Assembly: GCA_026936335.1 (NCBI GenBank)
Contig: JAPMXV010000074.1
Coordinates: 124,001 to 188,000, forward strand
Length of the DNA: 64,000 bases
DNA from: Mantamonas sphyraenae STR306
Lineage: Eukaryota; Protista; CRuMs
Reading direction: 5' to 3'
Part shown: positions 26,201 to 48,972 of the stretch, in pieces
Layout: each line of letters opens with the position of its first letter
How positions within the stretch are numbered: the stretch's first letter is position 1
Translations under genes and position numbers: made by a program
Notes under the pieces: model-generated
Seen by the model: the letters and a program-made list of their open reading frames with translations, nothing else
What the model was told of the DNA's origin: nothing
Database searches by the model: none

Positions 26201-28098
26201 CCGTTCCTTCTCGTTTGCAGCCTCCTTTTCCGCCTTGGCTTCCTTCAGGGCCGCCTTGACGCTGTTCAGGATTTCCTGGTTCAGTTGCATCTGCAGCTTT
26301 TGCGTCTCCCCTGCCTTTTGGCTCTTGTTCAGCTCCCGTTGGGTGAGTTGCAACTGCTGCAGCAATTGCACGTCCTCCCCTCCCGTGTCCAGCCCCCCCA
26401 TGCCCATCCGTTGCAATCCGCTTGGCGAGCGAGGTGACGGCGAGGACGACGAGGATGCACGCGCAGACGCCGACGACGAGCCTCCCACACTCGTGTTTGT
26501 GCTCTCGGACATGGAGTCCATGGACATGCGCTTGAGTTCCAGGGACAGGACGTCGTCGTAGTACGTCACCTGCATGCTGCGGTCGCAGGAGGAGCCGCCG
26601 TAGACAAAGAAGCGAGCAGGTGAGTGAACACCTGCCATGGCCATTGCCATGCCCTCACGTGCCGCACTGGTGCCACTCGTCTTGGCACTGCTACTGGGCT
26701 TGTGCCAACGTGACGCCAGGATGTCCAGCACGTGAAAGTCCTTGAATGTGTGCAGGGCGTGGGAGTACGTGTACCCGCCCATCACCAGCAGGTGTGGCAC
26801 CCCAGACAGGTCCAACACAGCCATGGCATGGTTCGCACGTGCCGACGGACCCGATCCAGCGGTGATGGGTGAATGCCATCGTTTGGTGTCCAGGTCCAGC
26901 ACCGTCAGGTCGTCGTAAAAGGTGTCAAAGTAGTTGTACTTGTGGCCACCAAACATGTACAACTTGTTCTGGTGTGCACACACACTGCTGTATGCACGTG
27001 CGCCAGGTTTGCTTCCTGTGCATTGCAGCTGCGTCCACGTCCATCGCGTCGTGTCCAGCTGCCACACGTCGTCGTAGAACGTGGAATCATCCATGCCGCC
27101 AAACACGTACAGCATGTGTCCCACCATCGTTGCCGCGTGGCCCTTGCGAGGTGCAGGCGCGTTTCCCTGTGTTGCAAGCGTGAGTGTTTGTGGGGGTGTT
27201 TGTGTGTGTGTGCGTGCGTGTCAGTCGTCTTGCAGATTTGCAGCCAATTCTGCCCGTTTGCCAGACATCACTTTGCGGACTCCCTCTGGACCCAGTGGGG
27301 GTACGACGTGTGTTGTAGGCACGCATGCATGGCAATTGGCCACGAGACAAGGCGTATGCATTGTCTCGACAGGCGGTGAGGCAGGAATGAGGCGAGGTGC
27401 GTGTGGAGAAAAGGAACGCAACGAAAGGAAGAGGGACAAGCATGACTCACCTGCGCACGCTGCACGCTCCATACGCTGGACGAGGCGTTGTACAGAAAGA
27501 GGTCGTTTGTGCAAACGGCGTCGCCGTCGTCTGTGAGGGCACTTCCACCAAAGAGGAGGATGTACGAGGTGTCGTACGCGTGCATGGAGTGACCTGAGCG
27601 GGGAGCTGGGATGTCGCCGCTGGCATCCACCAGCGTCCACTGCTTTCCGTCGACCCCAAATGCCCACACGTTGCTGTCCATGGTGAGGTCCTTCTGATTG
27701 TGTGGCACGCCACCAAACATGTACAGCGAGTCCTTGGCCAGGGCCATGGCGTGGCCGTCGCGTGAACCAGGCTGAAGCAACGAGTGCGACGGCAGCTGTT
27801 GCACATCCACCACCAGCGGGTCGGTGCTCGACGACGACACACTTCCACTGGTGCTGGTGGTGCTGCTGCTGTGGAAGCGTCGGAATGACGACGGTGACGA
27901 TGGTGACGACGGTTGGAGGCGAAAGGAAGAGGCACGGGCTGACGAGGGCGAGCCCAGGCCAGGCGAACGGTAGGAAGAGGCACGTGGGGAGGCAGGCGAG
28001 ACTGAACGTGAGCTTGGTGATCGGCGTACACTCGGACTGGAGGGTGTGGATGACGATGATGAGGCCAGCCACGACCAGTTGGAGGAGGACGATGACAT
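20207..28098 (-). CDS. Giant kelch-repeat + coiled-coil protein with tandem 15-aa repeats, 2 exons (~2535 aa)
   Basis: Exon 1 28098-27451 (Ser-rich, then kelch RDGHAM...LYMFGG, PRSGHSM...LLFGG), intron CAG|GTGAGT...ACAG|, exon 2 27166-20207 (further kelch blades, ~1200 aa coiled coil, repeat tail). Confidence 0.85.
20315..21400 (-). repeat. Coding higher-order tandem repeat: alternating 258- and 168-bp units (426-bp period)
   Basis: The atgccatctgcttctgctg anchor recurs at 20443, 20701, 20869, 21127 and 21295. It encodes KEKEEALAEQQGKLE / KEKEDALAEQQKQMA / SQHGDNEAEIK / KAHEDALAALQSKLE. Confidence 0.9.
21400..22845 (-). repeat. Coding minisatellite, 45-bp unit, about 32 copies (KEREDALAEQH[G/E]KMT)
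   Basis: Near-identical 45-bp units are visible in both the DNA and the translation. Confidence 0.92.
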
Positions 28099-28445
28099 CC
28101 TCGCTGGGTTTTGGTTGGCAGCGCGGGTGGTGTGCCTGTTGTGGGCGGCAGTGCAATGGTGTCCACTGCCTTGCTTGGTTGTGTCCACGTGTGTGTGTGT
28201 GCGTGTCAGTGTGTGACTGTGTGCAGCAGCATCGACAGTGTGTCTGCGTGGCCATGCAGTGTGCTCCTGCCCAGAGGAGTGATGGGGTGTTGGTGTGTGA
28301 CACCATTGCACAATGCCAGATTCAACTGGTGTGGCTTTGTTGTTGGGTGTTCGCTCTGTCCACTCCTCTGCCCAATGGTCCAGCAGCACCATTGCCCACC
28401 TTCTCTTCATTCTCCCATCCCTGCCCACACATCCTCCAACGCTCT

Positions 28446-31400
28446 CTAAACTCCGTCATTGTCTTCTTCTGCCGCTTCCAGAGAGCCCATCGACCCTGCT
28501 CTCTCCCCACGCAGCTCTTCCAGATGCAGCTGCAGATCCACAACCACCACACGCAGTTCTTCCAACTCCTTGCCAGATGACGACGATGACCCCATCCCGT
28601 CCATCTCCTCCAGCGTCTGTGCCACCATCGATCGCACGGCGTCCATGTCTGCTGTACCCCTGGCCATTTGTTTCACCTGCAGCTCTGTCACCCAGCCCAG
28701 CAGCTGTGGATACTGCTTTGCCACTTTCTTGATCGCTTTCCATGACTTGCCCAGCCGCCGTTCCATGCTTCCGACACGCTCCTCCATGTCTTTTCGCCAC
28801 GCTTGCAGTTCCTTCAGTGCATCGTTGTCATCCAGCACACGTCCATACAGCAGCGCATGTGTATGCAAGCTGACCATGTGCACCATGCATCGCCCACAGT
28901 TCTCTTTCTCAACCTCCACCAGCGTAGACATATCCACACGCAACGTGTGCTGTGCCCAATCCATCCGCAACACCTCCTCAACATTCCCACTGCCCACACA
29001 CACGTGACACAGTGGATAGCACCGCATGCTCCCAGTCAGTCCGTCGCACAGCCCGCTCTCGGCCGCCAGCCGTCGCAAAAGCACCTCCACCTGTCCCATC
29101 GTCTCTGCCACCCCACGCCACGAGTCTTGCGCAACCACAACGTCCATGTACCGCGAGTGTGGCTCATGCACAACCACAATGTGCGGCGCATTCGCTGGCC
29201 ACACGTGCATCCAGTTGGTGTGCACGTGCTCGATGTCGATTCCTTCCGGGTATGCCTCAATCAGCCTCACCTGCACCAGGTTGAACAGCGCAGGTGGCAG
29301 CATGTGCCAATTCTCTGCCTGCCATGCCTCATCCTGCTCCTGCTCCTCGTCATCCCCTTCTCCTTCCCGGCCCGTCACCACCCACACAAACCGACGTCCA
29401 ATCCGACACCCGTTCCCACCCATCCACTCCCCAGGCATCTCCGTCTCCACCGTCCGCAGAAACGGAAACACAAGCGTGTCTGTCCCCACCCGTGCGCACA
29501 TCTCCACCTCACACAGCAGCTCCAGCAACACATCCGCCACCCCATCCTCATCACCTCCGTCACCTCCTCCTCCCCAAATCTTCCCATGCAGCTCCGCCAC
29601 CTGCTCTCGCAATCCATCATCCCATTTCAACAGCCCATGGTGCTTCCCCTCCGCAATCTGGTCCTCTTTGTCCAGCTCCTGCACCTCTGCACCGCTCACA
29701 AAGCCTCCCATCAGCTTCGCCAGCCACACAGGGTCCACCACAACCACCCCTGCCCCTCTGTGCCACACCACCTCCTGCATGTGGTGCAGTTCCTCCAGCG
29801 ATGCGGCAAAGATCCGCCCGCTCTTGCTCGGAAAATGCTCCTGTAGCTTCTCATTCCTCTTGACCATCTTCTCCAGTTCCTCCACACGCATCCACGGCTG
29901 CTCCATCCCACCATTCTTCCGCAGTCCCTGCACATACTTCTGCAGCTCCACTGTCCCGCGTGGCACCATCCTCCTCTCTGCCAGTGCCACACTCGCATCC
30001 TCCAAACTGCCCAACAACCCATCCACGTTGTCCTTCCACACATCCCCATCTACCACAAACACTCCCTTCTCTGCATCCATCCGCAGCTGCTCGTATCTCT
30101 TGCTTTCCTTCCACCCTTCCACCCACCCTTTCACCATCCCACATGCCTCTTCCCGATCCATCCTCTCCCCCACCTTCACCTTCTCTCCCAGATCTGCATG
30201 TGTCACCACAAACCACATCTGCGGCTTCTTCTTCCCTGCCACCTTGGGTGCCACCTTGCTCGCCACCATGTCCAGCCACACCTCCAGCTCCCCACGTGCT
30301 GCCTCCATGTCCACCCTGTGTCCACCTTCCACTGCATCCCACGCCACCATCGATGCCACCAGCACAAACACCCCGCCCTGGCCCATCAACAGGTACTGGT
30401 GGCCCACCCAGTACTCTGCCTGTCCGCCATAGTCACTGATACGCACACGCACATCCCCATCCCTCAGATCAAACTCATACACATCCATGCTGTGTGTCGC
30501 ATCCGTCGTCCTCTCCTCGCTGTCTAGCTTGCGTTTGGCTGTGCGCCACCTGAAGAACACCTTGCCCCACTCTCCCCACGAGCTGTTCCGCTTCATCGTG
30601 TCAATCAACGTCGTCTTGCCCTGTCCACCATGTCCCAGCACCATCCAGTTGACCCATTCCCACGCCGTGTCCATCCGTCCCAGATACTCCACCACCGCTT
30701 GCGCTCCTTTCTTCACCACAAACCCAGGCACATCGTCCAACGCCTCCTCGTGCTCCAGCAGCAAGTGCTCCAACTTCCCGAGATTCTCCATTGCTTGTCT
30801 GGGCAACACGCTGATGCCTGATCTCCGCAGATCCAGGACACGCAGATCCGCACACTGGCCAATCTCCTCAGGAAGCTCTGTCACATCACACTCACTCTCA
30901 GCCACCAAACACAGCGCCTGAGCTTGGATGCACCGAGCAGAGGACAGCTCAGCAGCCAACTGCTGCGATGTGGAGAACGACACAAGGCCATCCCGCTCAG
31001 CCCAGGCACCCAGCATGGCCAAATGTGTCGACGGGTGTCTGCTTGCTGCGATGTCCAGTGGAGTCTCTCCATAACCGGATTTGACAGTGATACTTGCACC
31101 ACGAGCGATGAGTAGCATTGCAATTTCTGTGAACCCACTCTCTGCAGCATTGAACAACGGTGTTCGTCCGTACTCATCTGCTTTGTCCACCTTTGCTCCC
31201 CTGTCCAACAGCATCTTTGCCGTCTCTGTGTGCCCATCGCGTGCTGCACTGTGCAACGGTGTCCTCCCGTGCTTACGGGGCTTGTCCACAAGTGCTCCCC
31301 AGTCGAGCAGCATCGTAGCAGTTTCTGTGTGTCCGTTTTCTGCTGCAAGGTGCAACGGTGTCGACCCGGTCCACCGCGCTTTCTCCACCTGTGCTCCCCT

Positions 31401-31766
31401 GTCCAGCAGTATCGTCGCCGTCTCTGTGTGCCCGTTCCTTGATGCATTGAGCAACGGCGTCCACCCGTCCCCGTCCGCCTTGTCCACCTCTGCTCCCCTG
31501 TCCAGCAGCAGCTTTGCCGTCTCTGTGTGCCCGTACTTTGCTGCAACATGCAACGGTATCGCTCCGTCGCCCCTCCTCGTGTTCACCTCTGCTCCCCTAT
31601 CCAGCAGTAGCTTTGCCGCAGTAGTTTGCCCCCGTTGCACCGCGTGGTGCAACGCTGTCCATCCTCGCCAACCCTCGTCGTTCACATCTGCACCCCGATC
31701 AATCAACTCCTCCATTACACGAGTATCACCCCACCTCACTGCTTCAATCAGCTCTGTGTCGCTCAT
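28446..31766 (-). CDS. Roco protein A: ankyrin (N-cap + 6 + C-cap) - short LRR - Roc GTPase - COR - coiled coil
   Basis: ANK GxTPLHxAA; LRR LPEEIGQCADLRVLDLRRSGISVLP; linker VPGFVVKKGAQAVVEYL; Roc G1 GHGGQGKTT, G2 DATHSMDV, G3 DYGGQAEYWVGHQYLL, G4 VVTHAD; COR LEELHH...VVVDPVWLAKLM, LVFPFLR, LPPALFNLVQVRL. Intronless, stop TAG. Confidence 0.9.
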   Translation of the reverse strand: MSDTELIEAVRWGDTRVMEELIDRGADVNDEGWRGWTALHHAVQRGQTTAAKLLLDRGAEVNTRRGDGAIPLHVAAKYGHTETAKLLLDRGAEVDKADGDGWTPLLNASRNGHTETATILLDRGAQVEKARWTGSTPLHLAAENGHTETATMLLDWGALVDKPRKHGRTPLHSAARDGHTETAKMLLDRGAKVDKADEYGRTPLFNAAESGFTEIAMLLIARGASITVKSGYGETPLDIAASRHPSTHLAMLGAWAERDGLVSFSTSQQLAAELSSARCIQAQALCLVAESECDVTELPEEIGQCADLRVLDLRRSGISVLPRQAMENLGKLEHLLLEHEEALDDVPGFVVKKGAQAVVEYLGRMDTAWEWVNWMVLGHGGQGKTTLIDTMKRNSSWGEWGKVFFRWRTAKRKLDSEERTTDATHSMDVYEFDLRDGDVRVRISDYGGQAEYWVGHQYLLMGQGGVFVLVASMVAWDAVEGGHRVDMEAARGELEVWLDMVASKVAPKVAGKKKPQMWFVVTHADLGEKVKVGERMDREEACGMVKGWVEGWKESKRYEQLRMDAEKGVFVVDGDVWKDNVDGLLGSLEDASVALAERRMVPRGTVELQKYVQGLRKNGGMEQPWMRVEELEKMVKRNEKLQEHFPSKSGRIFAASLEELHHMQEVVWHRGAGVVVVDPVWLAKLMGGFVSGAEVQELDKEDQIAEGKHHGLLKWDDGLREQVAELHGKIWGGGGDGGDEDGVADVLLELLCEVEMCARVGTDTLVFPFLRTVETEMPGEWMGGNGCRIGRRFVWVVTGREGEGDDEEQEQDEAWQAENWHMLPPALFNLVQVRLIEAYPEGIDIEHVHTNWMHVWPANAPHIVVVHEPHSRYMDVVVAQDSWRGVAETMGQVEVLLRRLAAESGLCDGLTGSMRCYPLCHVCVGSGNVEEVLRMDWAQHTLRVDMSTLVEVEKENCGRCMVHMVSLHTHALLYGRVLDDNDALKELQAWRKDMEERVGSMERRLGKSWKAIKKVAKQYPQLLGWVTELQVKQMARGTADMDAVRSMVAQTLEEMDGMGSSSSSGKELEELRVVVVDLQLHLEELRGERAGSMGSLEAAEEDNDGV

Positions 31767-32729
31767 CCTCCAGTTCTGCCCCACACGTCAGCCTTCCAAC
31801 CTCCCTCCCAAACGCCCACTCCCACACTCACACCCTCTCCTCCCCACCAACACATTGCACATTGTTCCCACTCACCTTTCACAATCCAATTGCCCCTCCC
31901 TGCGCACCTAGCATCCATTCCCTTTCCCTCTCTGCTCCTCTGTTCCCTCCCACTCCCAATCACCCCATTGCCACCCAACCCCCACCAGCCCTTTCCGTCT
32001 CTCATTCTTCAATCCTTCCCGTTCTGCTTCTCCTCCCCCCGGCATACCTCCATCGCAAGTGCCACCCCCACCCGGCAACTGCCAGCACACGCCTCACAGC
32101 CTTCCTCATCGAGGATTCCCACACTCTAAACCACGCTATTTCATCTTGAAACACCCTTCATCCACCCCTGGCGATGTCACGAGTCAACGGCGACGTGTGC
32201 TTCGATCTGCTCAGAGCTGGCACTGTAGATCAATATCCCAAACACCCTCATCAGCCTCCTGTCCTGCCACAACGTGCTGCCACTGCCATCATACTCATCC
32301 AGTGTGTCCACCTCGCCGATCAAGCACACAAACTGATACAGCAGTGCAACAGGGAACAGCAGCTGCCACTGCATCCACCCCAAACACCTCCACCATGCAC
32401 TTGCTGCACATTCAGTGAGTGCCACAATCTCACCTTTGCACACAATCCTCTCATCACACCGTACCACTGCCCCAGCCGTCCCTCACATGTCAGCACACAC
32501 AATCCCTCTTCCCACCCTCACATCCCACACGATCCCCCCCCCACCCCTCGCAATCAACTCCATGCCAAACCAACACACTCTCCACACCTCACGCGCGTGT
32601 ATCAATCTCAAACTACGGCAGAAAGCAGGGGGCAATCTTTGTTCTTGCTCTCTCCCTCGGTCTCTCTCTCTCTGCCCACACTGGATACAAGCAGCAGCAG
32701 CAGCAGCAGCAGCTTCACAGCTGTTCCAC

Positions 32730-33215
32730 TTACTCCTCCCACTCATCAGCAGAGTCCTCCTCCTCCTCATCGGAGCTGGAGCCCTCAGAGTAGTCATCCA
32801 CATCCTCAATGTCAGACTGCAGCAGACGCGGGCTGAACACAGCTGCCGTGGCCACGGGCATACCGCCACCGTACTGAGTGCGGAACGTACCGTCGGCCTT
32901 CTGGTGCGGCCACACGCCAGCCTTCTCCATTGTGTAGCGCACGTTGCGGAACTTCTCGCGGAAGTTGTAGTACGCCTGGCCCACCTTGGTCTGCGAGAAC
33001 TTCTTGCCAAACTCAGCACCCAGCTTCTGGCGCAGCGCCGTCTTGGCCTTGTCACCGTACTTCATCACCTGCTTCTTCAGGAAGTCGCGGGCGTCAAAGT
33101 TCTCCTTGGCCACAATCTTGTTGACCGAGTTCATCACCTCACCGTACTTCTGCGAGATCATCTGGAAGGTCTTGCTCTTGGACAGCGACTCACGGATGCG
33201 GGCCAGCACACCGTT
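32730..33215 (-). pseudogene. Duplicated 3' fragment of the cationic secreted gene (copy 1), frame intact
   Basis: Matches 45066-45551 with only three substitutions that I could see. Lacks the signal peptide and upstream exons. Confidence 0.8.
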
Positions 33216-33264
33216 GGTCACACAGTCGACGGTGGTGGACCTGAGGGCATTCTGTGGGCTTTTG

Positions 33265-33747
33265 TCACCCCTTGAGGAGGGTCAAACGGGCAGTGACCCA
33301 CACGTTGCTGTCCATGGTGAGATCCTTCTGATTGTGTGGTACGCCACCAAACATGTACAGCGAGTCCTTGGCCAGGGCCATGGCGTGGCCGTCGCGTGAA
33401 CCAGGCTGAAGCAATGAGTGCGACGCCAGCCGCTGCACATCCACCACCAGCGGGTCGGTGCTCGACGACGACACACTTCCACTGGTGCTTGCGCTGGTGG
33501 TGCTGGTGGTGTTGGTGCTGTGGAAGCGGCGGAACGACGACGGTGACGATGGTGACGACGGTTGGAGGCGAAAGGAAGAGGCACGGGCTGACGAGGGCGA
33601 GCCCAGGCCAGGCGAACGGTAGGAAGAGGCACGTGGGGAGGCAGGCGAGGCTGAACGTGAGCTTGGTGATCGACGTACACTGGGACTGGAGGGTGTGGAT
33701 GACGATGATGAGGCCAGCCACGACCAGTTGGAGGAGGACGATGACAT
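33265..33747 (-). pseudogene. Duplicated, truncated 5' fragment of the kelch/coiled-coil gene (copy 1)
   Basis: MSSSSSNWSW...LYMFGGVPHNQKDLTMDSNVW matches 28098-27663, then runs into the filler (VTARLTLLKG*). Confidence 0.8.
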
Positions 33748-34095
33748 CCTCGCTGGGTTTTTGGTTGGCAGCGCGTGTGGTGTGCCTGTTGTGGGCGGCA
33801 GTGCAATGGTGTCCACTGCCTTGCTTGGTTGTGTCCACGTGTGTGTGTGTGCGTGTCAGTGTGTGACTGTGTGCAGCAGCATCGACAGTGTGTCTGCGTG
33901 GCCATGCAGTGTGCTCCTGCCCAGAGGAGTGATGGGGTGTTGGTGTGTGACACCATTGCACAATGCAGGATTCAACTGGTGTGGCTTTGTTGTTGGGTGT
34001 TCGCTCTGTCCACTCCTCTGTCCAATGGTCCAGCAGCATCGTAGCCCAACTTATCTTCATTCTCCCATCCCTGCCCACACATCACCCAACGCTCT

Positions 34096-37000
34096 TTACA
34101 CTCCTTCCTCTTCTTCTTCTTCACCCTCCTCCTCTACTGCTTCTCCTGATCCTGATTCCTCCGTCCCTGCTCTCTCCCCTCGCAGCTCTTCCAGATGCAG
34201 CTGCAGATCCACAACCACCACACGCAGTTCTTCCAACTCCTTGCCAGATGACGACGATGACCCCATCCCGTCCATCTCCTCCAGCGTCTGTGCCACCATC
34301 GATCGCACTGCGTCCATGTCTGCAGTGCCCCCGGCCCTGTGCTTCACCTGCAGCTCTGTCACCCAGCCAAGCAGCTGTGGATACTGCTTTGCCACTTTCT
34401 TGATCGCTTTCCATGACTTGCCCAGCCGCCGTTCCATGCTTCCGACACGCTCCTCCATGTCTTTCATCCTCGTTTGCAGTTCCATCAGTGCATCGTTGTC
34501 ATCCAGCACACGTCCATACAGCAGCGCTTGTGTATGCAGGTTGACTTTGTGCACCCTGCATGACCCGCACTTCTCCTTCTTCACCTCTGCCAACTCATGC
34601 ACATCCACACGCAGCCCATGCATCCCCCAGTCCATCCGCAACACCTCATCCACCTCTCCACTTGCCAAACACCGGTGACAGAGCGGATAGCACCTCAGTC
34701 CACTGCCCAGTCCATCACACAGCCCACTCTCCTCGGCCACACTCCGCACAAGGGCCTCCACTTTGCCCATCGTCTCCACCGCATCAGCCCATCCATCACT
34801 CGCCACCACAACGTCCACATACCGTGTGTGTGGCTCATGCACAGCCACAATGTGCGGTGCATCCCTGGGCCACACGTGCATCCAGTTCACATGCACCTGC
34901 TCTGGCTCCTCCACCCCGTCTGGGAATGCCTCAATCAGCCGCACTTGCACCAGATTGAAGAGAGCAGGAGGCAGCATGTGCCACTTCTCTGCCTGCCATG
35001 CCTCATCCTGCTCCTGCTCCTGCTCCTCCTCCCCATCATCTCCTTCCCCTCCCTCCACCACCCACACAAACCGCCGTCCAATCCGACACCCGTTCCCTGC
35101 CATCCACTCCCCGGGCAGCTCCATCTCCACCGTCCGCAGAAACGGAAACACAAGTGTGTCTGTTCCCACACGTGCACACATCTCCACCTCACACAGCAGC
35201 TCCAGAAGCACATCCGCCACCCCATCCTCACCACCATCTCCTCCTCCTTCCCACAGCTCCCCATGCAGCCTCCCCACCTGCTTCCGCAATCCATCATCCC
35301 ATTGCACGAGCCCGTGATGCTTCCCCTCCGCAATCTGCTTCCCTTTGTCCAACCCCTGAACCTCTGCACCACTCACAAACCCACCCATCAGCTTCGCCAG
35401 CCACACAGGGTCCACCACAACCACCCCTGCCCCTCTGTGCCACACCACCTCCTGCATGTGATGCAGTTCTTCCAGCGATGAATGAAAGATCCGCCCGCGC
35501 CTGCTCGGAAAGTGCTCCCGGATCTCCTCATTCCCCTTCACCATCGCCTCTAGTTCCTCCTCACGCATCCACGGCTGCTCCATCCCACCACTCTCCCGCA
35601 GTCCTTGCACGAACCTCTGCAGTTCCACCGTCCCGCGTGGCACCATCCTGTCCTCTGCCAGTGCCACACTCGCTTCCTCCAGACTGCCCAACAGCCCATC
35701 CACGTTGCCCTTCCACACATCCCCATCCACAACAAACACTCCCTTCTCCCTGTCCATCCGCAGCTGCTCGTACCTCTTGCTCTCCTTCCACCCTTCCACC
35801 CACCCTTGCACCATCCCACGTGCATCCTCCCGATCCATCCTCTCCCCCACCTTCACCTTCTCTCCCAGATCTGCATGCGTCAGCACAAACCACATCTGCG
35901 GTTTCTTCTTCCCTGCCACCTTGGATGCCACCTTGCTCGCCACCATGTCCAGCCACACCTCCAGCTCCCCACGCGCCGCCTCCATGTCCAACCTGTGCCC
36001 ACCTGCCACTGCATCCCACGCCACCATCGATGCCACCAGCACAAACACCCCGCCCTGGCCCATCAACAGGTACTGGTGGCCCACCCAGTACTCTGCCTGT
36101 CCGCCATAGTCACTAATACGCACACGCACATCCCCATCCCTCAGATCAAACTCATACACATCCATGCTGTGTGTCGCATCCGTCGTCCTCTCCTCCTTGT
36201 CCAGTTTCTGCTTCCGTCTCCTCCGTCTGAAAACCACTCGCCTCCTCTCCTTCCACGAGCTATTCCGCTTCATCGTGTCAATCAACGTCGTCTTGCCCTG
36301 TCCACCATGTCCCAGCACCATCCAGTTGACCCATTCCCATGCCGTGTCCATCCGTCGCAGATACTCTACCACCGCCTTCCCTCCCTTCTTCACCACAAAC
36401 CCAGGCACATCATCCAACGCCTCGTCATGCTCCAGTCGGAGCCACTGAAGCTCTTTCAAGCTGGCCATTGTCTGCCTGGGCAACACGCTAATGCCTGATC
36501 TGCGCAGATCCAGGACACGCAGCTCCACGCACAGGCCAATCTCCTCAGGCAGTTCTGTCACACCACTGTCACTCCCAGCAACCAGACACAGCGCCTGAGC
36601 TTGGATGCAACGATCAGAGGAAAGCTCAGCAGCCAACTGCTGCGATGTGGAGAATGACACAAGGCCATCCCGCTCAGCCCAGGCACCCAGCATGGCCAGA
36701 TGTGTCGACGAGTGCCTGCTTGCTGCGATGTCGAGTGGGGATTCTCCATTCATGTTTCTGACAGTGGCATCTGCACCACGAGCGATGAGAAGCGTCGCCG
36801 TCTCTGTGTGTCCGCTGTGTGCTGCTAGGTGCAACGGTGTCCGTCCGTCCCCATCCGTCTTGTCCACCTCTGCTCCCTTGTCCAGCAGAGATGCCGCCGT
36901 CTCAGTGTGCCCGTTTGATACTGCAATGTACAACGGGGTCCATCCGACCCCATCCGTCTTGTTCACCTCAGCTCCCCTGTCCAGCAGCATCGTCGAAGTC

Positions 37001-37539
37001 TCTGTGTACCCGTTCTGTGCTGCTCTGTGCAACGGTGTCCGTCCATCCCCATCCGTCTTGTCCACCTCTGCTCCCCTTTCCAGCAGCATTGACGCCGTCT
37101 CTGTGCGCCCGTTCTGTGCTGCTTTGTGCAACGGTGTCCGTCCGTACACATCCGTCTTGTCCTCTGCTCCCCTTTCCAGCAGCATTGACGCCGTCTCTGT
37201 GTGTCCGTTGTGTGCTGCAATGTGCAACGGTGTCCGTCCGTACACATCCGTCTTGTCCACCTCTGCTCCACTGTCCAGCAGCATTGTAACTATCCCCAGG
37301 GGACCCTTGAATACTGCAAAGTGCAAAGGTGTCGACCCGTCCCTCTCCGTCTTGTCCACCTCTGCTCCCCTGTCCAGCAGCAGCTTCGCCGCGTTGGTTT
37401 TCCCCTCCCACACCGCGTGGTGCAACGCTGTCCACCGATCCTCATCCTGTTCGTTCACATCTGCACCCCCATCAATCAAATTCTCCATTGCACTCATATC
37501 CTCCCTCCTCACTGCTCTCATCAGCTCTGTGTCCCTCAT
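34096..37539 (-). CDS. Roco protein B: ankyrin (N-cap + 7 + C-cap) - LRR - Roc - COR - coiled coil
   Basis: Same motifs as copy A. The ATG at 37539 (MRDTELMRAV) aligns with MSDTELIEAV of copy A. Stop TAA. Confidence 0.9.
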   Translation of the reverse strand: MRDTELMRAVRREDMSAMENLIDGGADVNEQDEDRWTALHHAVWEGKTNAAKLLLDRGAEVDKTERDGSTPLHFAVFKGPLGIVTMLLDSGAEVDKTDVYGRTPLHIAAHNGHTETASMLLERGAEDKTDVYGRTPLHKAAQNGRTETASMLLERGAEVDKTDGDGRTPLHRAAQNGYTETSTMLLDRGAEVNKTDGVGWTPLYIAVSNGHTETAASLLDKGAEVDKTDGDGRTPLHLAAHSGHTETATLLIARGADATVRNMNGESPLDIAASRHSSTHLAMLGAWAERDGLVSFSTSQQLAAELSSDRCIQAQALCLVAGSDSGVTELPEEIGLCVELRVLDLRRSGISVLPRQTMASLKELQWLRLEHDEALDDVPGFVVKKGGKAVVEYLRRMDTAWEWVNWMVLGHGGQGKTTLIDTMKRNSSWKERRRVVFRRRRRKQKLDKEERTTDATHSMDVYEFDLRDGDVRVRISDYGGQAEYWVGHQYLLMGQGGVFVLVASMVAWDAVAGGHRLDMEAARGELEVWLDMVASKVASKVAGKKKPQMWFVLTHADLGEKVKVGERMDREDARGMVQGWVEGWKESKRYEQLRMDREKGVFVVDGDVWKGNVDGLLGSLEEASVALAEDRMVPRGTVELQRFVQGLRESGGMEQPWMREEELEAMVKGNEEIREHFPSRRGRIFHSSLEELHHMQEVVWHRGAGVVVVDPVWLAKLMGGFVSGAEVQGLDKGKQIAEGKHHGLVQWDDGLRKQVGRLHGELWEGGGDGGEDGVADVLLELLCEVEMCARVGTDTLVFPFLRTVEMELPGEWMAGNGCRIGRRFVWVVEGGEGDDGEEEQEQEQDEAWQAEKWHMLPPALFNLVQVRLIEAFPDGVEEPEQVHVNWMHVWPRDAPHIVAVHEPHTRYVDVVVASDGWADAVETMGKVEALVRSVAEESGLCDGLGSGLRCYPLCHRCLASGEVDEVLRMDWGMHGLRVDVHELAEVKKEKCGSCRVHKVNLHTQALLYGRVLDDNDALMELQTRMKDMEERVGSMERRLGKSWKAIKKVAKQYPQLLGWVTELQVKHRAGGTADMDAVRSMVAQTLEEMDGMGSSSSSGKELEELRVVVVDLQLHLEELRGERAGTEESGSGEAVEEEGEEEEEEGV

Positions 37540-38522
37540 TCTTTCTCGCTTGCTGCCCCCGACGTCAGCAGTCCAATTTCTCTCCCCAACGCCCACACTC
37601 ACACTCACCCTCTCCTCCCCACCATCACATTGCACATTCTTCCCACTCACCTTCCACAATCCAATTGCCCCTCCCTGCGCACCTTGCATCCATTCCCCTC
37701 CTCTCTGTTCCTCCGTCTCCTCCCACTCCCAATCACCCCATTGCCACCCAAACCCCACCAGCCCCTTCCCTCTTTCGTTGTTCACTCCTTCCCGTTCTGC
37801 TTCTCCTACCCCGGCCGTGTCTCCATTTCAAGCTACACCCACCCAGCAACTGCCAGCATCCCCCTCACAGCCTTCCTGACTGACATTGGATTCCCACACA
37901 CTAAACCACGCTATTTCATCTTGAAAAACCCTTCATCCACCCCTGCGGATGTCACGAGTCAACGGCGAAGTGTGTTTCGATCTGCTCCGATCTGGCAATG
38001 TTGATCAACATCCCACCCAACCTCATCTGCCTCATGACCTGCCCCAACGTGCTTCCACTGCCATCATAATCACCCAGTGTGTCCACCTCGCCGGACAAGC
38101 ACACAAACGGAAGCAGCAGTGAACATGGAGCAGCACCTGCCACTGCCTCGATCCCAAACAGCTCCACCATGCACTTGCTGCACATTCAGTTGAGAGCCAC
38201 AATCTCACCTTTGCACACAATCCTCACATCACACCGTACCACTGCCCCAGCCGTCCCTCACATGTCAGCACACACGATCCCTCTTCCCACCCTCACCCCC
38301 ACACCCACCCCACCCATCTCCCCCATCCCCCCACCCAACCCCCCCAATCAACTCCATGCCAAACCAACACACTCTCCACACCTCAAGCGCGTGGATCAAT
38401 CTCAAACTACGGCAGAAAGTGGGGGGCAATCTTTGTTCTTGCTCTCTCCCTCGGTCTCTCTCTCTCTGCCCACACTGGATACAAGCAGCAGCAGCAGCTT
38501 CACAGCTTCACAGCTGTTCCAC

Positions 38523-39008
38523 TTACTCCTCCCACTCATCAACAGAGTCCTCCTCCTCCTCATCGGAGCTGGAGCCCTCAGAGTAGTCATCCACATCCTC
38601 AATGTCCGACTGCAGCAGACGCGGGCTGAACACAGCTGCCGTGGCCACGGGCATACCGCCACCGTACTGAGTGCGGAACGTACCGTCGGCCTTCTGGTGC
38701 GGCCACACGCCAGCCTTCTCCATTGTGTAGCGCACGTTGCGGAACTTCTCGCGGAAGTTGTAGTACGCCTGGCCCACCTTGGTCTGCGAGAACTTCTTGC
38801 CAAACTCAGCACCCAGCTTCTGGCGCAGCGCCGTCTTGGCCTTGTCACCGTACTTCATCACCTGCTTCTTCAGGAAGTCGCGGGCGTCAAAGTTCTCCTT
38901 GGCCACAATCTTGTTGACCGAGTTCATCACCTCACCGTACTTCTGCGAGATCATCTGGAAGGTCTTGCTCTTGGACAGCGACTCACGGATGCGGCCCAGC
39001 ACACCGTT
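38523..39008 (-). pseudogene. Duplicated 3' fragment of the cationic secreted gene (copy 2), frame intact
   Basis: Matches 45066-45551 with two visible substitutions. Confidence 0.8.
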
Positions 39009-39057
39009 GGTCACACAGTCGACGGTGGTGGACCTGAGGGCATTCTGTGGGCTTTTG

Positions 39058-39537
39058 TCACCCCTTGAGGAGGGTCAAACGGGCAGTGACCCACACGTTG
39101 CTGTCCATGGTGAGATCCTTCTGATTGTGTGGTACGCCACCAAACATGTACAGCGAGTCCTTGGCCAGGGCCATGGCGTGGCCGTCGCGTGAACCAGGCT
39201 GAAGCAACGAGTGCGACGGCAGCTGTTGCACATCCACCACCAGCGGGTCGGTGCTCGACGACGACACACTTCCACTGCTGCTTCCTCTGCTGGTGCTGGT
39301 GGTGGTGCTGTGGAAGCGTCGGAATGTCGACGGTGACGACGGTGACGACGGTTGGAGGCGAAAGGAAGAGGCACGGGCTGACGAGGGCGAGCCCAGGCCA
39401 GGCGAACGGTAGGAAGAGGCACGTGGGGAGGCAGGCGAGGCTGAACGTGAGCTTGGTGATCGGCGTATACTGGGACTGGAGGGTGTGGATGACGATGATG
39501 ATGCCAGCCACGACCAGTTGGAGGACGACGATGACAT
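39058..39537 (-). pseudogene. Duplicated, truncated 5' fragment of the kelch/coiled-coil gene (copy 2)
   Basis: Same breakpoint and same VTARLTLLKG* tail as copy 1. Confidence 0.8.
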
Positions 39538-39880
39538 CCTCGCTGGGTTTTGGTTGGCAGCGCGGGTGGTGTGCCTGTTGTGGGCGGCAGTGCACAATGG
39601 TGTCCACTGCCTTGCTTGGTTGTGTCCACGTGTGTGTGTGTGTGTGTGACTGTGTGCAGCAGCATCGACAGTGAGTCTGTGTGGCCATGGAGTGTGCTCC
39701 TGTCCGGAGGAGTGATGGGGTGTTGGTGTGTGACACCATTACACAATGCAGCAATCAACCGGCATGTGGCTTTGTTGTTGGGTGTTCGCCCTGTCCACTC
39801 CTCTGTCCAATGGTCCAGCAGCATCGTAGCCCAACTTATCTTCATTCTCCCATCCCTGCACACACATCCTCCAACACTCT

Positions 39881-42800
39881 TCACACCCCTTCATCATCTT
39901 CATCTTCATCCTCCTCCTCTGCCACTTCTCCGGATTCCTCCGTCCCTGCTCTCTCCCCTCGCAGCTCTTCCAGATGCAGCTGCAGATCCACAACCACCAC
40001 ACGCAGTTCTTCCAACTCCTTGCCAGATGACGACGATGACCCCATCCCGTCCATCTCCTCCAGCGTCTGTGCCACCATCGATCGCACTGCGTCCATGTCT
40101 GCTGTGCCCCCGGCCCTGTGCTTCACCTGCAGCTCTGTCACCCAGCCAAGCAGCTGTGGATACTGCTTTGCCACTTTCTTGATCGCTTTCCATGACTTGC
40201 CCAGCCGCCGTTCCATGCTCCCAACACGCTCCTCCATGTCTTTCATCCTTGTTTGCAGTTCCATCAGTGCATCTTTGTCATCCAACACACGTCCATACAG
40301 CAGCGCCTGTGTATGCAGGTTGACTTTGTGCACCCTGCATGAACCACACTTCTCTTTCTCCACCTCTGCCAACTCCTGCACATCCACACGCAGCCCGTGC
40401 ATCCCCCAGTCCATCCGCAGCACCTCATCCACCTCTCCACTTGCCAAACACCGGTGACAGAGCGGATAGCACCTCAGTCCACTGCCCAGTCCATCACACA
40501 GCCCACTCTCCTCGGCCACACTCCGCACAAGGGCCTCCAATTTGCCCATCGTCTCCACCACATCCGCCCATCCAGCACTCGCCACCACAACGTCCACATA
40601 CCGTGTGTGTGGCTCATGCACAGCCACAATGTGCGGTGCATCCACAGGCCACACGTGCATCCAGTTCACATGCACCTGCTCGGGCTCCTCCACCCCGTCT
40701 GGGAATGCTTCAATCAGTCGCACCTGCACCAGATTGAAGAGAGCAGGAGGCAGCATGTGCCACTTCTCTGCCTGCCATGCCTCGTCCTGCTCCTCCTGCT
40801 CCTCATTCCCTTCCTGATCAGTCACCACCCACACAAACCGCCGTCCAATCCGACACCCGTTCTCTGCCATCCACTCCCCGGGCAGTTCCATCTTCACCGT
40901 CCGCAGAAATGGAAACACAAGCGTATCTGTCCCCACACGTGCACACATCTCCACCTCACACAGCAGCTCCAGCAGCACATCCGCCACCCCATCCTCACTC
41001 GTACATCCCCACAGCCCCCCATGCAACCTCCCCACCTGCTTCCTCAATCCATCATCCCACTGCACCAGCCCATGGTGTTTCCCCTCCCCAATCTGCTTCC
41101 CTTTGTTCAGCCCTTGCACATGTTCTCCGCTCACAAACCCTCCCATCAGCTTCGCCAGCCACACAGGATCAAGTACAACCACCCCTGCTCCCCTGTGCCA
41201 CACCACCTCTTGCATGTGGTGCAGTTCCTCCAGCGATGAATGAAAGATCCGCCCTGAACTGCTCGGAAAGTGCTCTTTCGTCACCCAATACCTCTTGACC
41301 AGTTGCATCAGCCTCTCATCCCGAATCCAAGGTTTGGCAAGCATGCTACTCTCCCGCAGTCCCTGCACATACTTCTGCAGCTCCACCGTCCCGCGTGGCA
41401 CCATCCTCTCCTCTGCCAGTGCCACACTCGCATCCTCCAAACTGCCCAACAACCCATCCACGTTGTCCTTCCACACATCCCCATCTACCACAAACACTCC
41501 CTTCTCTGCATCCATCCGCAGCTGCTCGTACCTCTTGCTCTCCTTCCACCCTTCCACCCACCCTTTCAACATCCCACATGCATCCTCCCGATCCATCCTC
41601 TCCCCCACCTTCACCTTCTCTCCCAGATCTGCATGTGTCACCACAAACCACATCTGCGGCTTCTTCTTCCCTGCCACCTTGGGTGCCACCTTGCTCGCCA
41701 CCATGTCCAGCCACACCTCCAGCTCCCCACGTGCTGCCTCCATGTCCACCCTGTGTCCACCTTCCACTGCATCCCACGCCACCATCGATGCCACCAGCAC
41801 AAACACCCCGCCCTGGCCCATCAACAGGTACTGGTGGCCCACCCAGTACTCTGCCTGTCCACCATAGTCACTGATACGCACACGCACATCTCCACCCTTC
41901 AGATCAAACTCATACACATCCATGCTGTGTGTCGCATCCGTCGTCCTCTCCTCCTTGTCCAGCTTGAGTTTGGCTGTGCGCCACCTGAAGAACACCTTGC
42001 CCCACTCTTCCCACGAGCTATTCCGCTTCATCGTGTCAATCAGTGTCGTTTTGCCCTGTCCACCATGTCCCAGCACCATCCAGTTCACCCACTCCCACGC
42101 AGTATCCATCCGTGCCAGATATTCCACCACCGCCTTCCCTCCTTTCTTCACCACAAACCCAGGCACATCATCCAACGCCTCATCATGCTCCAGCAACAAG
42201 TGCTCCAACTTCCCGAGATTCTCCATTGCCTGCCTGGGCAACACGCTGATGCCCGATCTGCGCAGATCCAGGACACGCAGCTCCACACACATGCCAATCT
42301 CTTCAGGAAGCTCTGACACATCGCTTTCACTCTCAGCAACCAAACACAGCGCCTGAGGTTGGATACAACGAGCAGACGACAGCTCAGCAGCCAACTGCTG
42401 CGATGTGGAGAACGACACAAGGCCATCGCGCTCAGCCCAGGCACCCAGCATGGCCAAATGTGTCGACGGGTGCCTGGTTGCTGCGATGTTGAGTGCAGAC
42501 CCTCCAAACGGGGTTGTGACAGTGACATCTGCACCACGAGCGATGAGAAGCGTCACCGTCTCTGTCTGTCCGTTCGCTACCGCAATGTGCAACGGTGTCC
42601 GTCCGTTCTCATCCGCCTTGTCCACCTGTGCTCCCCTGTCCAGCAGCATCGTCGCAGTCTCTGTGTACCCTTTCTCTGCTGCAACGTACAAAGGTGTCCG
42701 TCCGTTCTCATCCGCCTTGTCCACCTGTGCTCCCCTGTCCAGCAGCATCATCACCATCTCTGTGTTTCCTTTCTTTGCTGCTGTGTACAACGGTGTCCAC

Positions 42801-44089
42801 CCAATGCTGTCCGCCTTGTCCACCTCTGCTCCCCTGTCCAGCAGCATCGTCGCCGTCTCTGTGTACCCTTTCTCTGCTGCAACGTACAACGGTGTCCATC
42901 CCTTCCCCCACGCCTTGTCCACCTCTGCTCCCCCGTCCAGCAGCATCGTCGCCGTCTCTGTGTACCCTTTCTCTGCTGCTTTGTACAACGGTGTCCACGT
43001 CCCCCCCACCTTTTTCACCTGTGCTCCCCTGTCCAGCAGCATCATCACCGTCTTTGTGTGCCCGTGCTCTGCTGCAATGTACAAAGGTGTCCGTCCGAAA
43101 TCATCCCTCTTGTCCACCTCTGCTCCCCTGTCCAGCAGCATCGTCGCCGTCTCGGTGTGCCCGTGCTGTGCTGCTTTGTACAACGGTGTCCACCCGTTCA
43201 TATTCGCCTTGTCCACATCTGCTCCCCTGTTCAGCAGCATCGTCGCCGTCTCTGTGTGCCCGTTCTCTGCTGCGATGTACAACGGTGTCCTCCCGTTCTC
43301 ATCAATCTTGTCCAACGCTGTTCCCCTTTCCAGCAGCACTGTCACCGTCTCTGTGTGCCCCTCCTGTGCTGCCATGTGCAACGGTGTCCTCCCGTCCTTC
43401 TCCACCTCGTCCATCTCTGCTCCCCTGTCCAGCAGCATCATCACAGTCTCTGTGTGTCCGTACCATGCTGCAATGTGCAACGGTGTCCACCCGTCCGTCC
43501 CCGCCTTGTCCACATCTGCACCCCTGTCCAGCAGCATCGCCGCAGTCTCCGTGTGCCCGTTCGATGCTGCACTGAATAGAGGTGTCCGTCCGTCCCTATC
43601 CATCTTGTCCACCTCTGCTCCCCTGTTCAGCAGCATCGTCGCCGTCTCTGTGTGCCCTTCCTGAGCTGCAATGTGTAACGGTATGGCTCCGTACTTCGTC
43701 GGCATGTCCACTTCTGCTCCCCTGTCCAGCAGCATCATCACCGACTCTGTGTGCCCGTTCTGTGCTGCCATGTACAACGGTGTCCTCCCGCTCCTCTCCG
43801 CCTTGTCCAACGCTGTTCCTCTTTCCAGCAGCATCGTCACTATCCCCGTGTGACCCTTCAATGCTGCAAAGTGCAACGGTGTCCTCCCGTTCCTCTCCGT
43901 CTTGTCCACCTCTGTTCCCCTGTCCAGCAGCAACTTTGCCGCGTTTGTTTTCCCCTCCCACCCCGCGTGGTGCAACGCTGTCCACCCATCCTCATCCTGT
44001 TCGTTCACATCTGCACCCCCATCAATCAACTCCTCCATTACACGATTATCACCCCACCTCACTGCTTTCATCAGCTCTGCGTCGCTCAT
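39881..44089 (-). CDS. Roco protein C: ankyrin (N-cap + 15 + C-cap) - LRR - Roc - COR - coiled coil
   Basis: Same motifs as A and B. It is 296 aa longer than A, matching about nine extra 33-aa ankyrin units. ATG 44089, stop TGA. Confidence 0.9.
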   Translation of the reverse strand: MSDAELMKAVRWGDNRVMEELIDGGADVNEQDEDGWTALHHAGWEGKTNAAKLLLDRGTEVDKTERNGRTPLHFAALKGHTGIVTMLLERGTALDKAERSGRTPLYMAAQNGHTESVMMLLDRGAEVDMPTKYGAIPLHIAAQEGHTETATMLLNRGAEVDKMDRDGRTPLFSAASNGHTETAAMLLDRGADVDKAGTDGWTPLHIAAWYGHTETVMMLLDRGAEMDEVEKDGRTPLHMAAQEGHTETVTVLLERGTALDKIDENGRTPLYIAAENGHTETATMLLNRGADVDKANMNGWTPLYKAAQHGHTETATMLLDRGAEVDKRDDFGRTPLYIAAEHGHTKTVMMLLDRGAQVKKVGGTWTPLYKAAEKGYTETATMLLDGGAEVDKAWGKGWTPLYVAAEKGYTETATMLLDRGAEVDKADSIGWTPLYTAAKKGNTEMVMMLLDRGAQVDKADENGRTPLYVAAEKGYTETATMLLDRGAQVDKADENGRTPLHIAVANGQTETVTLLIARGADVTVTTPFGGSALNIAATRHPSTHLAMLGAWAERDGLVSFSTSQQLAAELSSARCIQPQALCLVAESESDVSELPEEIGMCVELRVLDLRRSGISVLPRQAMENLGKLEHLLLEHDEALDDVPGFVVKKGGKAVVEYLARMDTAWEWVNWMVLGHGGQGKTTLIDTMKRNSSWEEWGKVFFRWRTAKLKLDKEERTTDATHSMDVYEFDLKGGDVRVRISDYGGQAEYWVGHQYLLMGQGGVFVLVASMVAWDAVEGGHRVDMEAARGELEVWLDMVASKVAPKVAGKKKPQMWFVVTHADLGEKVKVGERMDREDACGMLKGWVEGWKESKRYEQLRMDAEKGVFVVDGDVWKDNVDGLLGSLEDASVALAEERMVPRGTVELQKYVQGLRESSMLAKPWIRDERLMQLVKRYWVTKEHFPSSSGRIFHSSLEELHHMQEVVWHRGAGVVVLDPVWLAKLMGGFVSGEHVQGLNKGKQIGEGKHHGLVQWDDGLRKQVGRLHGGLWGCTSEDGVADVLLELLCEVEMCARVGTDTLVFPFLRTVKMELPGEWMAENGCRIGRRFVWVVTDQEGNEEQEEQDEAWQAEKWHMLPPALFNLVQVRLIEAFPDGVEEPEQVHVNWMHVWPVDAPHIVAVHEPHTRYVDVVVASAGWADVVETMGKLEALVRSVAEESGLCDGLGSGLRCYPLCHRCLASGEVDEVLRMDWGMHGLRVDVQELAEVEKEKCGSCRVHKVNLHTQALLYGRVLDDKDALMELQTRMKDMEERVGSMERRLGKSWKAIKKVAKQYPQLLGWVTELQVKHRAGGTADMDAVRSMVAQTLEEMDGMGSSSSSGKELEELRVVVVDLQLHLEELRGERAGTEESGEVAEEEDEDEDDEGV

Positions 44090-45065
44090 CCTCCAGTTCT
44101 GCCCCACACGTCAGCCCCTCCAATCTCCCTCCCCAACGCCCACTCTCACACCCTCTCCCCCTCACCAACACATTCCACATTCTTCCCACTCACCTTCCAC
44201 AATCCAATTGTCCCTCCCTGCGCACCTTGCATCCATTCCCCTCCTCTCTGCTCCTCCGTTGCCTCCCACTCCCAATCACCCCATTGCCATCCAACCCCCA
44301 CCCACCAGCCCCTTCCTTCTCTCATTCTTCACTCCTTCCCATTCTGCTTCCCCTACCCCCGCCGTGTCTCCATCGCAACAGCCACCCGCACCGGCAACTG
44401 CCAGCATCCCTCACAGCCTTCGTCATTGACATCGGGCACCCACGCAAGAAACCAAGCAATAACGTCTTGCAACACGCTTCATCCACCCCTGGCGATGTCA
44501 CGTGTCAACGGCGACGTGTTTCGATCTGCTCAGAGCTGGCAATGTTGATCAACATTTCCAAACACCCCCATCAGCCTCATGACCTGCCACAACGTGCTGC
44601 CACTGCCATCATACTCAACCAGTGTGTCCACCTCGCCGGACAAGCACACAAACTGATACAGCAATGCAACGGGGAACAGGGACAGCAGCGGCCACTGCCG
44701 CGACCCCAACACCTCCACCATGCACTTGATGCACATTCAGTCAAGTGCCACAATCTCACCTTTGCACACAATCCTCTCATCACACCGTACCACTGCCCCA
44801 GCCGTCCCTCCCATCTCAGCACACACAATCCCTATTCCCACCCTCACCACCCCACCCATCTCCCCAACCCCCCAACCCCCCCACCATATCAACTCCATGC
44901 CAACCCAACACACTCTCCACACCTCACGCGCGTGAATCAATCTCAAACCACGGCAGAAAGCAGGGGGCAATCTTTGTTCTTGCTCTCTCCCTCGGTCTCT
45001 CTCTCTCTCTGACCATACTGGATACAAGCAGCAGCAGCAGCTTCACAGCTTCACAGCTGATCCAC

Positions 45066-46646
45066 TTACTCCTCCCACTCATCAGCAGAGTCCTCCTCCT
45101 CCTCATCGGAGCTGGAGCCCTCAGAGTAGTCATCCACATCCTCAATGTCCGACTGCAGCAGACGCGGGCTGAACCCAGCTGCCGTGGCCACGGGCATACC
45201 GCCACCGTACTGAGTGCGGAACGTACCGTCGGCCTTCTGGTGCGGCCACACGCCAGCCTTCTCCATTGTGTAGCGCACGTTGCGGAACTTCTCGCGGAAG
45301 TTGTAGTACGCCTGGCCCACCTTGGTCTGCGAGAACTTCTTGCCAAACTCAGCACCCAGCTTCTGGCGCAGCGCCGTCTTGGCCTTGTCACCGTACTTCA
45401 TCACCTGCTTCTTCAGGAAGTCGCGGGCGTCAAAGTTCTCCTTGGCCACAATCTTGTTGACCGAGTTCATCACCTCACCGTACTTCTGCGAGATCATCTG
45501 GAAGGTCTTGCTCTTGGACAGCGACTCACGGATGCGGCCCAGCACACCGTTCTTCAGAGAGTCGAACTTGTACTTGAGGGCGCCGGTGATCTTGCCCTTG
45601 ATGTTGTTGAACGTGGAGATACCCTTGTTCAGCAGCTGGCCAACCTTGCCGCGGAGCAGGTTCTGGCCGGCCTTGAACTTGCCGATGGCACCCTTGATGA
45701 AGCCGAACACGTTGCCGCTCTTCACCTTGTCGTACACAGCCTTGGCCTTGCGCACAAAGCCGATGGCAGTCTTGACAAACGGGCTGCTGGCGATCTTGCC
45801 AAAGATGGACGAGCCCTTGATGGCGCCCATCACAACACCACCGATGCCCGTGAAGGACAGAGCAGTGGTCACGATGCCAAACAGCGGCGAGTTCATCACC
45901 TTCTTGGCCACCTGTACAAGACGAGAACAGCACGCCACAGTGTGCACATGGTGTGTTAGCGCCGCAAACACGCAAACGTGTGCTGGACCCCTTTTTTTTT
46001 CCCTCGCATCCACATGCTCGTTTTCCCCGCCACACACAACTTACCGAGATGACCTTGCCGGCGACACGGCCGATGCCACGAGCGACACGGCCCACGAAGC
46101 GACCAACACGGCGGAACGCACTGCAGAGGGCACACAGCGAGGTGGGGCGTCAGCAACAACGGCGGAAAAGGGGTGCGGCGAAAGAGGGCCAAAGAAAAAA
46201 ACCGAGCCGAAAGAAAAACCACGGCGCACGTTTGGGGCTGGCACAGACGTGTGGCTGCCCTGCCACACTCTGGCATGCAAGGGCTGTCTAGACAGGGATG
46301 CAACCTACCGTCCAATGCGGCGGAAGAACTGATCGTTGTCCTCCACATCGTCCGAGTCGTCGTTGTCGCTGCGCTCCTCTTCCTCCGACTGCTCCTCGGC
46401 CTCGCTGGCCTCGGAGAGGTTGTCGTCGGTAAAGTCGGCGTCAGCCTTGGTCTCGTCCATCAGACCGGTGTCCCAGTCCGACTCGTCCGAAGAGTCCTGT
46501 GTGGGTGGTGATGGAGAAAACGAGGCGTGTGTGTGTGAGTGAGAGCGGCCCTTCAGATTCCGCACCCTCCCGTTGTCACAACGTACGACGGCAGCCAGGG
46601 CAGCGCCAAGAATGCAGAGAATCACAAACGCAAACTTCAACTGCAT
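45066..46646 (-). CDS. Secreted prepro-protein: signal peptide, acidic pro-region, cationic amphipathic Gly/Lys/Arg-rich body, acidic tail (389 aa, 4 exons); antimicrobial/pore-forming-like
   Basis: Exons 46646-46587, 46496-46309, 46120-46045 and 45911-45066, with donors GTACGT, GTAGGT, GTAAGT and CAG acceptors in phases 0/2/0. Product: MQLKFAFVILCILGAALAAV-DSSDESD...DVEDNDQ-FFRRIGRAFRRVGRFVGRVARGIGRVAGKVISVAKKVMNSPLFGIV...DEEEEDSADEWEE. The gene model is well supported; the function is inferred. Confidence 0.8.
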
Positions 46647-46769
46647 GTTGAGGAAAGGGGGGGGTTGTTTTTTTGGGGGGTTTTGTGTGCTTGCGCCAGG
46701 GCATCCACACAAGCACTCCACAAGAGGGATCCGAAAGCATACCGGGGTGGGGGAATCCTTGCTTGGATC

Positions 46770-47963: not shown

Positions 47964-48106
47964 AGTACAGGTGGAAAGGGTGTGTGGTGGCACCGAGTGG
48001 CAAAGACGTGTGATTCACTCGCACGCCGAACAGAGTGCCCAAGACCCCCGTTGACGTCCATCAATCACCCCACCACCTTCACCACTACCCAATGAAACCA
48101 TTTCCA

Positions 48107-48886: not shown

Positions 48887-48972
48887 TCTTCTCGAATCCT
48901 ATCCACAACTCACACAACACCACACAAGTTGCACCGGCGAGCGCTTGGCCAGCAAACGCAAGTGAGAGAGAG

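Follow-up and report, generated by a model that had tools for sequence, protein, structure and literature searches.

Do three neighbouring genes that join ankyrin repeats to a Roco-type GTPase serve a protist as receptors for non-self? This question is raised by a 64,000-nucleotide stretch of the Mantamonas sphyraenae STR306 genome (contig JAPMXV010000074.1, here contig C74, 124001-188000), hereafter the window. The window was searched against the genome (25,061,354 bases in 78 contigs), and we give somewhat better than an even chance to the answer that the genes belong to a Mantamonas-specific birth-and-death family of cytosolic sensor-switch proteins for non-self recognition, in which a Roco GTPase would replace the STAND ATPase of nucleotide-binding leucine-rich repeat (LRR) receptors (NLRs).

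Three tandem Roco genes with variable ankyrin arrays

Three open, intronless reading frames of 1402, 1147 and 1106 amino acids (aa) lie head to tail on the minus strand of the window, with the following parts.

39881..44089 (-), Roco copy 1: 1402 aa; about 16 ankyrin repeats, about 2 LRRs, Roc, COR and C-terminal helical module; low-depth copy-specific RNA contigs
34096..37539 (-), Roco copy 2: 1147 aa; about 8 ankyrin repeats
28446..31766 (-), Roco copy 3: 1106 aa; about 7 ankyrin repeats; the copy used for folding
42467..44089 (-), ankyrin array of copy 1: 541 aa; 99-nt repeats about 79% alike; hypervariable binding face
36709..37539 (-), ankyrin array of copy 2: 277 aa
31032..31766 (-), ankyrin array of copy 3: 245 aa
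28449..28853, about 34099-34524 and about 39884-40303 (-), C-terminal helical module, in all three Roco copies

Every copy runs from ankyrin repeats (internal nucleotide identity about 75-82%) through about two LRRs, a G-domain (Roc) and a COR-sized region to a helical tail of about 135 aa. The units align pairwise at 87-88% over 4-6 kb and differ from one another by 12-13%. An initial sequence-only reading had described intact, intronless, kinase-less ANK-LRR-Roc-COR genes in tandem with ankyrin arrays of differing length; the reading frames, the alignments, the fold match to LRRK1 and the repeat counts of 16, 8 and 7 bear out this description.

On predicted folds and profile comparisons, the three genes are members of the Roco family, with Roc directly before COR. 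The AlphaFold model of copy 3 (pTM 0.68) was matched by Foldseek to LRRK1 (E 4.5e-21), the C. tepidum Roco (E 4.4e-18) and LRRK2, as well as to the isolated COR 3dpt (TMt 0.71) and the RocCOR structure 3dpu (TMt 0.70). Searches of the Atlas gave TM scores of 0.53-0.65 to Roc, COR-A and COR-B clusters by structure and 0.96 to Roc/COR clusters by ESM features, and a profile of the family matched LRRK2 residues 1254-1609 (E 1.7e-12). The motifs GHGGQGKTT (G1), the switch-I Thr in THSMD (G2) and DYGGQ (G3) are invariant across the three copies, and DYGGQ aligns, with a weak E-value, to DFGGQ of M. barkeri Roco2. By sequence, THAD would take the place of G4 and VDG that of G5, both of which are known to be variable in Roc domains (PMC6337361). 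In Pfam, Roc (PF08477) was reached at E 0.29, below the cut-off, and COR gave no match; because the fold and profile tests are positive, this miss reflects divergence rather than absence.

Other identities were considered and rejected. No kinase or WD40 domain follows COR, the frames ending about 135 aa past it in the helical tail, and the genes are therefore not LRRK1/2 orthologues. Domain annotation, Pfam and fold searches of the Roco copies found no STAND switch (NACHT or NB-ARC); as their nucleotide switch is Roc, the proteins may act like NLRs but are not NLRs. A viral or bacterial origin was rejected because no relative was found on viral contigs and distant matches were few: three distant Roc matches among 1.8 billion representatives and two generic Rocos in metagenomes. 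A word-indexed protein search gave no match, and a literature search turned up no paper connecting Mantamonas with Roco proteins.

Concerning selection, the ratio of nonsynonymous to synonymous differences (pN/pS) indicates purifying selection outside the ankyrins, the tail included (0.27-0.41; Roc 0.27, COR 0.40). Ankyrin variation is concentrated at beta-hairpin and first-helix positions. At six binding-surface positions, which we take to be those randomised in DARPin libraries and which were chosen independently of these data, pN/pS reached 1.6 (bootstrap 1.33-2.09), and 2.2-2.6 among close repeat pairs, and the ankyrin framework had an omega of about 0.3 in all codon models. These sequence comparisons make diversifying selection on the ankyrin surface likely. 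The earlier description of strongly diverged repeat surfaces is supported by this excess of amino-acid change on the ankyrin binding face against a conserved Roc-COR, an omega above 1 being model-dependent.

The tandem copies also appear, from their sequences, to be mosaics whose tracts were exchanged among tandem and dispersed loci. A PHI-type test gave 0.348 vs 0.470+/-0.009 (p<0.0005), and segment trees were incongruent: over the first part of COR, the nearest relative of copy 1 is a gene on contig C52 and those of copy 2 are genes on C56, and in COR-B copy 3 groups with genes on C51 and C56. These comparisons of exchange and repeat number were made between paralogues of one genome, not between isolates.

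Between 28000 and 45000, the sense strand of the Roco cassettes is strongly purine-skewed, spacer included (GC skew to -0.56 on the plus strand), and within the window the skew is limited to this cassette region.

Dispersed siblings, CHAT domains and a shared tail

The family extends through the genome: at least 12 Roco loci are close (68-100% identical across most of the core), and more distant ones exist besides. The flanks of dispersed paralogues were seen out to 1.5 kb, and several of their N-termini are incomplete. Several siblings are frameshifted, and their fronts vary between DARPin-like ankyrins, other ankyrins, and RI-type LRRs with ankyrins.

Some siblings end in a caspase-like CHAT domain (L011, L017, L018 and a cluster at C68:201030-232695). 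In L011 (C3, 341120-343303), the core is 77% identical and the helical module is followed by CHAT just under the Pfam cut-off; in the C68 cluster CHAT stands above it. The CHAT His and Cys motifs are kept in L011 and L017.

The helical module is also found outside the Roco family. It also closes twelve TKL-type kinases that show no Roc within the part matched; they lie on C25 (6 copies), C2 (3), C9, C34 and C58 and are 81-100% identical over kinase and tail. The match between Roco and kinase tails scored 48-53 bits, compared with at most 27.5 for heptad-block shuffles and less than 3 for other coiled coils, so by this sequence test it is a specific homology. Loci L029 and L030 belong to the kinase family, and the front of L029 contains ankyrins, as in some Roco siblings.

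As a separate observation, CHAT matches at C5:279567-280832 and C13:239544-240728 are followed immediately, within one open frame, by weak NACHT matches; both genes are candidate CHAT-NACHT proteins of NLR-like type.

The sequence-only reading had proposed an NLR-analogous sensor family. The Roco switch and the variable ankyrin face agree with this proposal, and it gains support because CHAT-bearing siblings, sensor swapping and tract exchange were found outside the window. At about two repeats, the LRR stretch is too short for a sensor array.

Origin of the array and the neighbouring secreted gene

The duplicated unit spans from 45551, inside exon 4 of an upstream secreted-protein gene, through the Roco gene to 27663, in exon 1 of a Kelch gene, and the array comprises the following flanking genes and fragments.

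45066..46646 (-), secreted prepro-protein gene: ATG 46646; exons 46646-46587, 46496-46309, 46120-46045, 45911-45066
20207..28098 (-), parent Kelch/coiled-coil gene: downstream breakpoint 27663 inside the first exon
38523..39008 (-), secreted-gene 3' passenger fragment: no signal peptide, no ATG at the junction
32730..33215 (-), second secreted-gene 3' passenger fragment: likewise without signal peptide or ATG at the junction
39009..39089 (-), junction 1 filler: 81 nt, identical to junction 2; stop in the Kelch frame
33216..33296 (-), junction 2 filler: the same 81 nt
39090..39537 (-), Kelch 5' passenger fragment
33297..33747 (-), second Kelch 5' passenger fragment

The co-duplicated Kelch 5' part, the shared filler with its stop in the Kelch frame and the many dispersed family copies go beyond what the sequence-only reading had noticed. 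The filler occurs nowhere else in the genome than at the two junctions, and a mobile-element end was rejected on this ground; a fusion protein was likewise rejected, because the Kelch frame stops within the filler. The two junction copies share derived changes relative to the parent. We infer one duplication with breakpoints in both flanking genes, followed by unequal crossing-over. The secreted-gene passenger (45069-45551) differs by only 0.4-0.6% between units, whereas the difference is 9-12% in the adjoining spacer (44090-44984), a sequence unmatched elsewhere in the genome; either the fragment was homogenised with its parent or mutation was raised around the Roco cassette. At its end, the Kelch gene (20207-27127, -) encodes a long coiled coil built from about 34 tandem repeats of 45 nt, with higher-order repeats of 168, 258 and 426 nt.

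Whether the array could be partly an assembly product was weighed with contigs of two Illumina DNA runs. The published assembly (FALCON, 25.06 Mb, 78 contigs, 59.19% GC) comes from a diploid strain (PMC10492846), and one unit might be allelic or the copy number might differ between homologues, the duplication itself being real. The shared fragment is 86.6 deep vs 38.4 for the single-copy flank (2.3x) and 79.8 vs 53.4 (1.5x), below the 3x of three units on both homologues, although contig depth is no measure of copy number; spacer contigs specific to unit 1 have half depth or less. The copy number per homologue may thus be lower than assembled. However, contigs of both DNA libraries branch precisely at 45551, where the depth changes by a step, and contain letters diagnostic of units 2 and 3, which shows the duplication to be real and rejects a pure haplotype artefact, and the adjoining secreted gene is almost homozygous while the units differ by 12-13%. 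We regard a partial assembly product as unlikely; it concerns the copy count alone and is compatible with the sensor reading.

The secreted gene lies upstream of the Rocos on the same strand. Its exon 1 encodes a hydrophobic, signal-peptide-like segment (the signal peptide was judged by eye), exon 2 an acidic segment (net -23), exon 3 an amphipathic one (+7, hydrophobic moment 1.02), and exon 4 a cationic part with an acidic tail. This layout of signal peptide, acidic pro-region and cationic amphipathic mature part matches that of antimicrobial precursors, and an antimicrobial or extrusome role is plausible from the sequence. No homologue outside the genome was found in an exon-by-exon search, and exon 4 had no relative in Pfam, protein-database or Atlas searches, and hence none in a known antimicrobial family. 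From 45551 (codon 121 of exon 4) onwards, the 3' part of the gene recurs twice, at 39008 and 33215, so that the earlier description of a secreted cationic amphipathic precursor with a co-duplicated 3' part was correct. At least four other loci form a dispersed family; the larger paralogues are L036 (C51), L037 (C5) and L038/L039 (C32), the C32 pair being inverted and nearly identical.

The same reading had raised a possible link of this gene to the Rocos as a bactericidal effector, and this link was not upheld. That the Rocos trigger the neighbouring secreted protein in a joint defence locus would fit their adjacency on one strand and the resemblance of the product to an acidic-pro, cationic amphipathic precursor, but we consider it very improbable. 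The duplicated halves start mid-exon at the breakpoint with neither start nor signal peptide, and the co-duplication is thus a breakpoint by-product; a Kelch fragment was co-duplicated equally. Within 1.5 kb of the dispersed Rocos there was no secreted-family match, and the four secreted paralogues are far from Roco matches. Run X3 is RNA, since it splices all three introns of the secreted gene; in this unchallenged culture, RNA contig depth was about 10^3-10^4 for the secreted gene and about 7 for contigs specific to Roco copy 1, a gap of about 1000-fold, and by this coarse measure no RNA was found in the spacer between them. The Rocos are transcribed at a low level and have no transcript in common with the secreted gene, which is probably a bystander or passenger.

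Beside it, two further genes were observed: an MnmA/TRMU tRNA thiouridylase gene (46539-47963, +), which is arranged head to head with the secreted gene and leaves hardly any spacer, and an intronless phage-type (mitochondrial-like) RNA polymerase gene (48035-52513, +).

Proposed function and comparison with known systems

In the mechanism that we propose, the variable ankyrins would bind foreign proteins, likely from viruses, intracellular bacteria or prey. Ligand on the array would shift the GTP/GDP-linked monomer-dimer cycle of Roc-COR, as Roco biochemistry suggests (PMC6337361). Because the window copies carry no enzyme, the output may run, more tentatively, through the C-terminal helical module to partners with the same module, either CHAT-bearing Rocos or Roc-less kinases. 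By analogy with the death-fold adaptors that couple animal sensors to effectors, one could picture a modular 'split-LRRK' immune system of ankyrin/LRR-Roco sensors, CHAT Rocos and 12 Roc-less repeat-kinases coupled in trans by the homologous module; we hold this fuller scheme to be doubtful.

Several points weigh against non-self recognition. The proposal is drawn from paralogue sequences and predicted folds of one genome; no effector domain was found in the three window copies, and the model of the helical tail has low confidence (pLDDT 54). Every ankyrin array varies most at surface positions. In the ankyrins, 86% of fourfold sites carry G or A, and this purine bias at synonymous sites clouds the ankyrin pN/pS, in which repeat pairs are moreover not independent; recombination distorts tree-based estimates. 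Surface omega was 1.3-2.3 under F1X4 and 0.5-1.2 under GY+F3X4, so that relaxed constraint could account for the surface. Characterised eukaryotic Rocos often have non-immune roles in chemotaxis, cytokinesis and trafficking (PMC3341825).

These last two points are also what would favour ordinary intracellular Rocos with LRRK- or Dictyostelium-like duties in signalling or trafficking, in which relaxed constraint lets the ankyrin surfaces drift and gene conversion keeps the framework uniform: surface omega lies near or below 1 under F3X4, the domain order equals the N-terminal half of LRRK1, and motility and trafficking are known tasks of eukaryotic Rocos (PMC3341825, PMC6337361). Yet counts restricted to the surface codons still give a higher pN (0.44-0.47) than pS (0.20-0.32), and birth and death of the family, sensor swapping and CHAT effectors argue against such a role, which we consider possible but rather unlikely. 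The strand skew confined to the cassette, the mosaicism, the broken siblings and the low RNA depth might instead reflect a near-neutral expansion, in which a recombination-prone, purine-skewed cassette was spread by conversion and most copies are redundant. Against this stand three reading frames intact over 3.3-4.2 kb and G-motifs invariant in all of them, and the purifying selection outside the ankyrins (pN/pS 0.27-0.41) weakens it to a distinctly improbable explanation. Non-self recognition by a Roco-switch sensor family therefore remains the reading that we prefer.

If this reading is true, NLR-like diversifying receptors with a Roco switch extend to CRuMs, a lineage placed at the base of Amorphea, with ankyrin joining as a sensor and intronless conversion as a diversifying mechanism. 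It would support counter-invader sensing as a recurrent role of Roc-COR and bear on the immune links of LRRK2 and DAPK1, and the shared tail suggests in concrete terms how a Roco that lacks a kinase could pass on a signal.

Rocos as protist immune receptors are already a known idea, and the novelty here lies in an ankyrin-sensing form in CRuMs and in a tail that kinases have as well. The candidate immune receptors of LRR-Roc-COR type in brown algae (Ectocarpus; PMC3341825, PMC11378527) likewise represent a lineage-specific expansion of Rocos without a kinase, form clusters, include pseudogenes and diversify an N-terminal repeat sensor; however, Ectocarpus shuffles LRR exons, whereas the Mantamonas sensor is an intronless ankyrin array changed by repeat number and conversion, its LRR has only about two repeats and CHAT occurs in siblings. 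Bacterial AP-GTPase (Roc)-COR counter-invader systems (PMC8195603) also combine a repeat sensor, Roc-COR and a variable C-terminal effector or adaptor, including caspase-like ones, with several paralogues per genome. With no close sequence relative, the comparison does not point to transfer; the Mantamonas Rocos differ in their eukaryotic host, ankyrin sensor and novel helical tail common with protein kinases. Fungal NLRs with highly conserved ankyrin repeats (PMC4986451) share internally similar repeats of variable number, with variation on the beta-hairpin and inner-helix face, but in Mantamonas the switch is Roc-COR rather than NACHT or NB-ARC, the sensor is N-terminal and the nucleotide identity of repeats is about 75-82%. 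LRRK1/LRRK2 and DAPK1 are the best structural matches, and LRRK1 has the same ANK-LRR-Roc-COR order; compared with these conserved single genes, the Mantamonas Rocos form a multi-copy, fast-turnover family with 14-17% identity, about two LRRs and neither kinase nor WD40.

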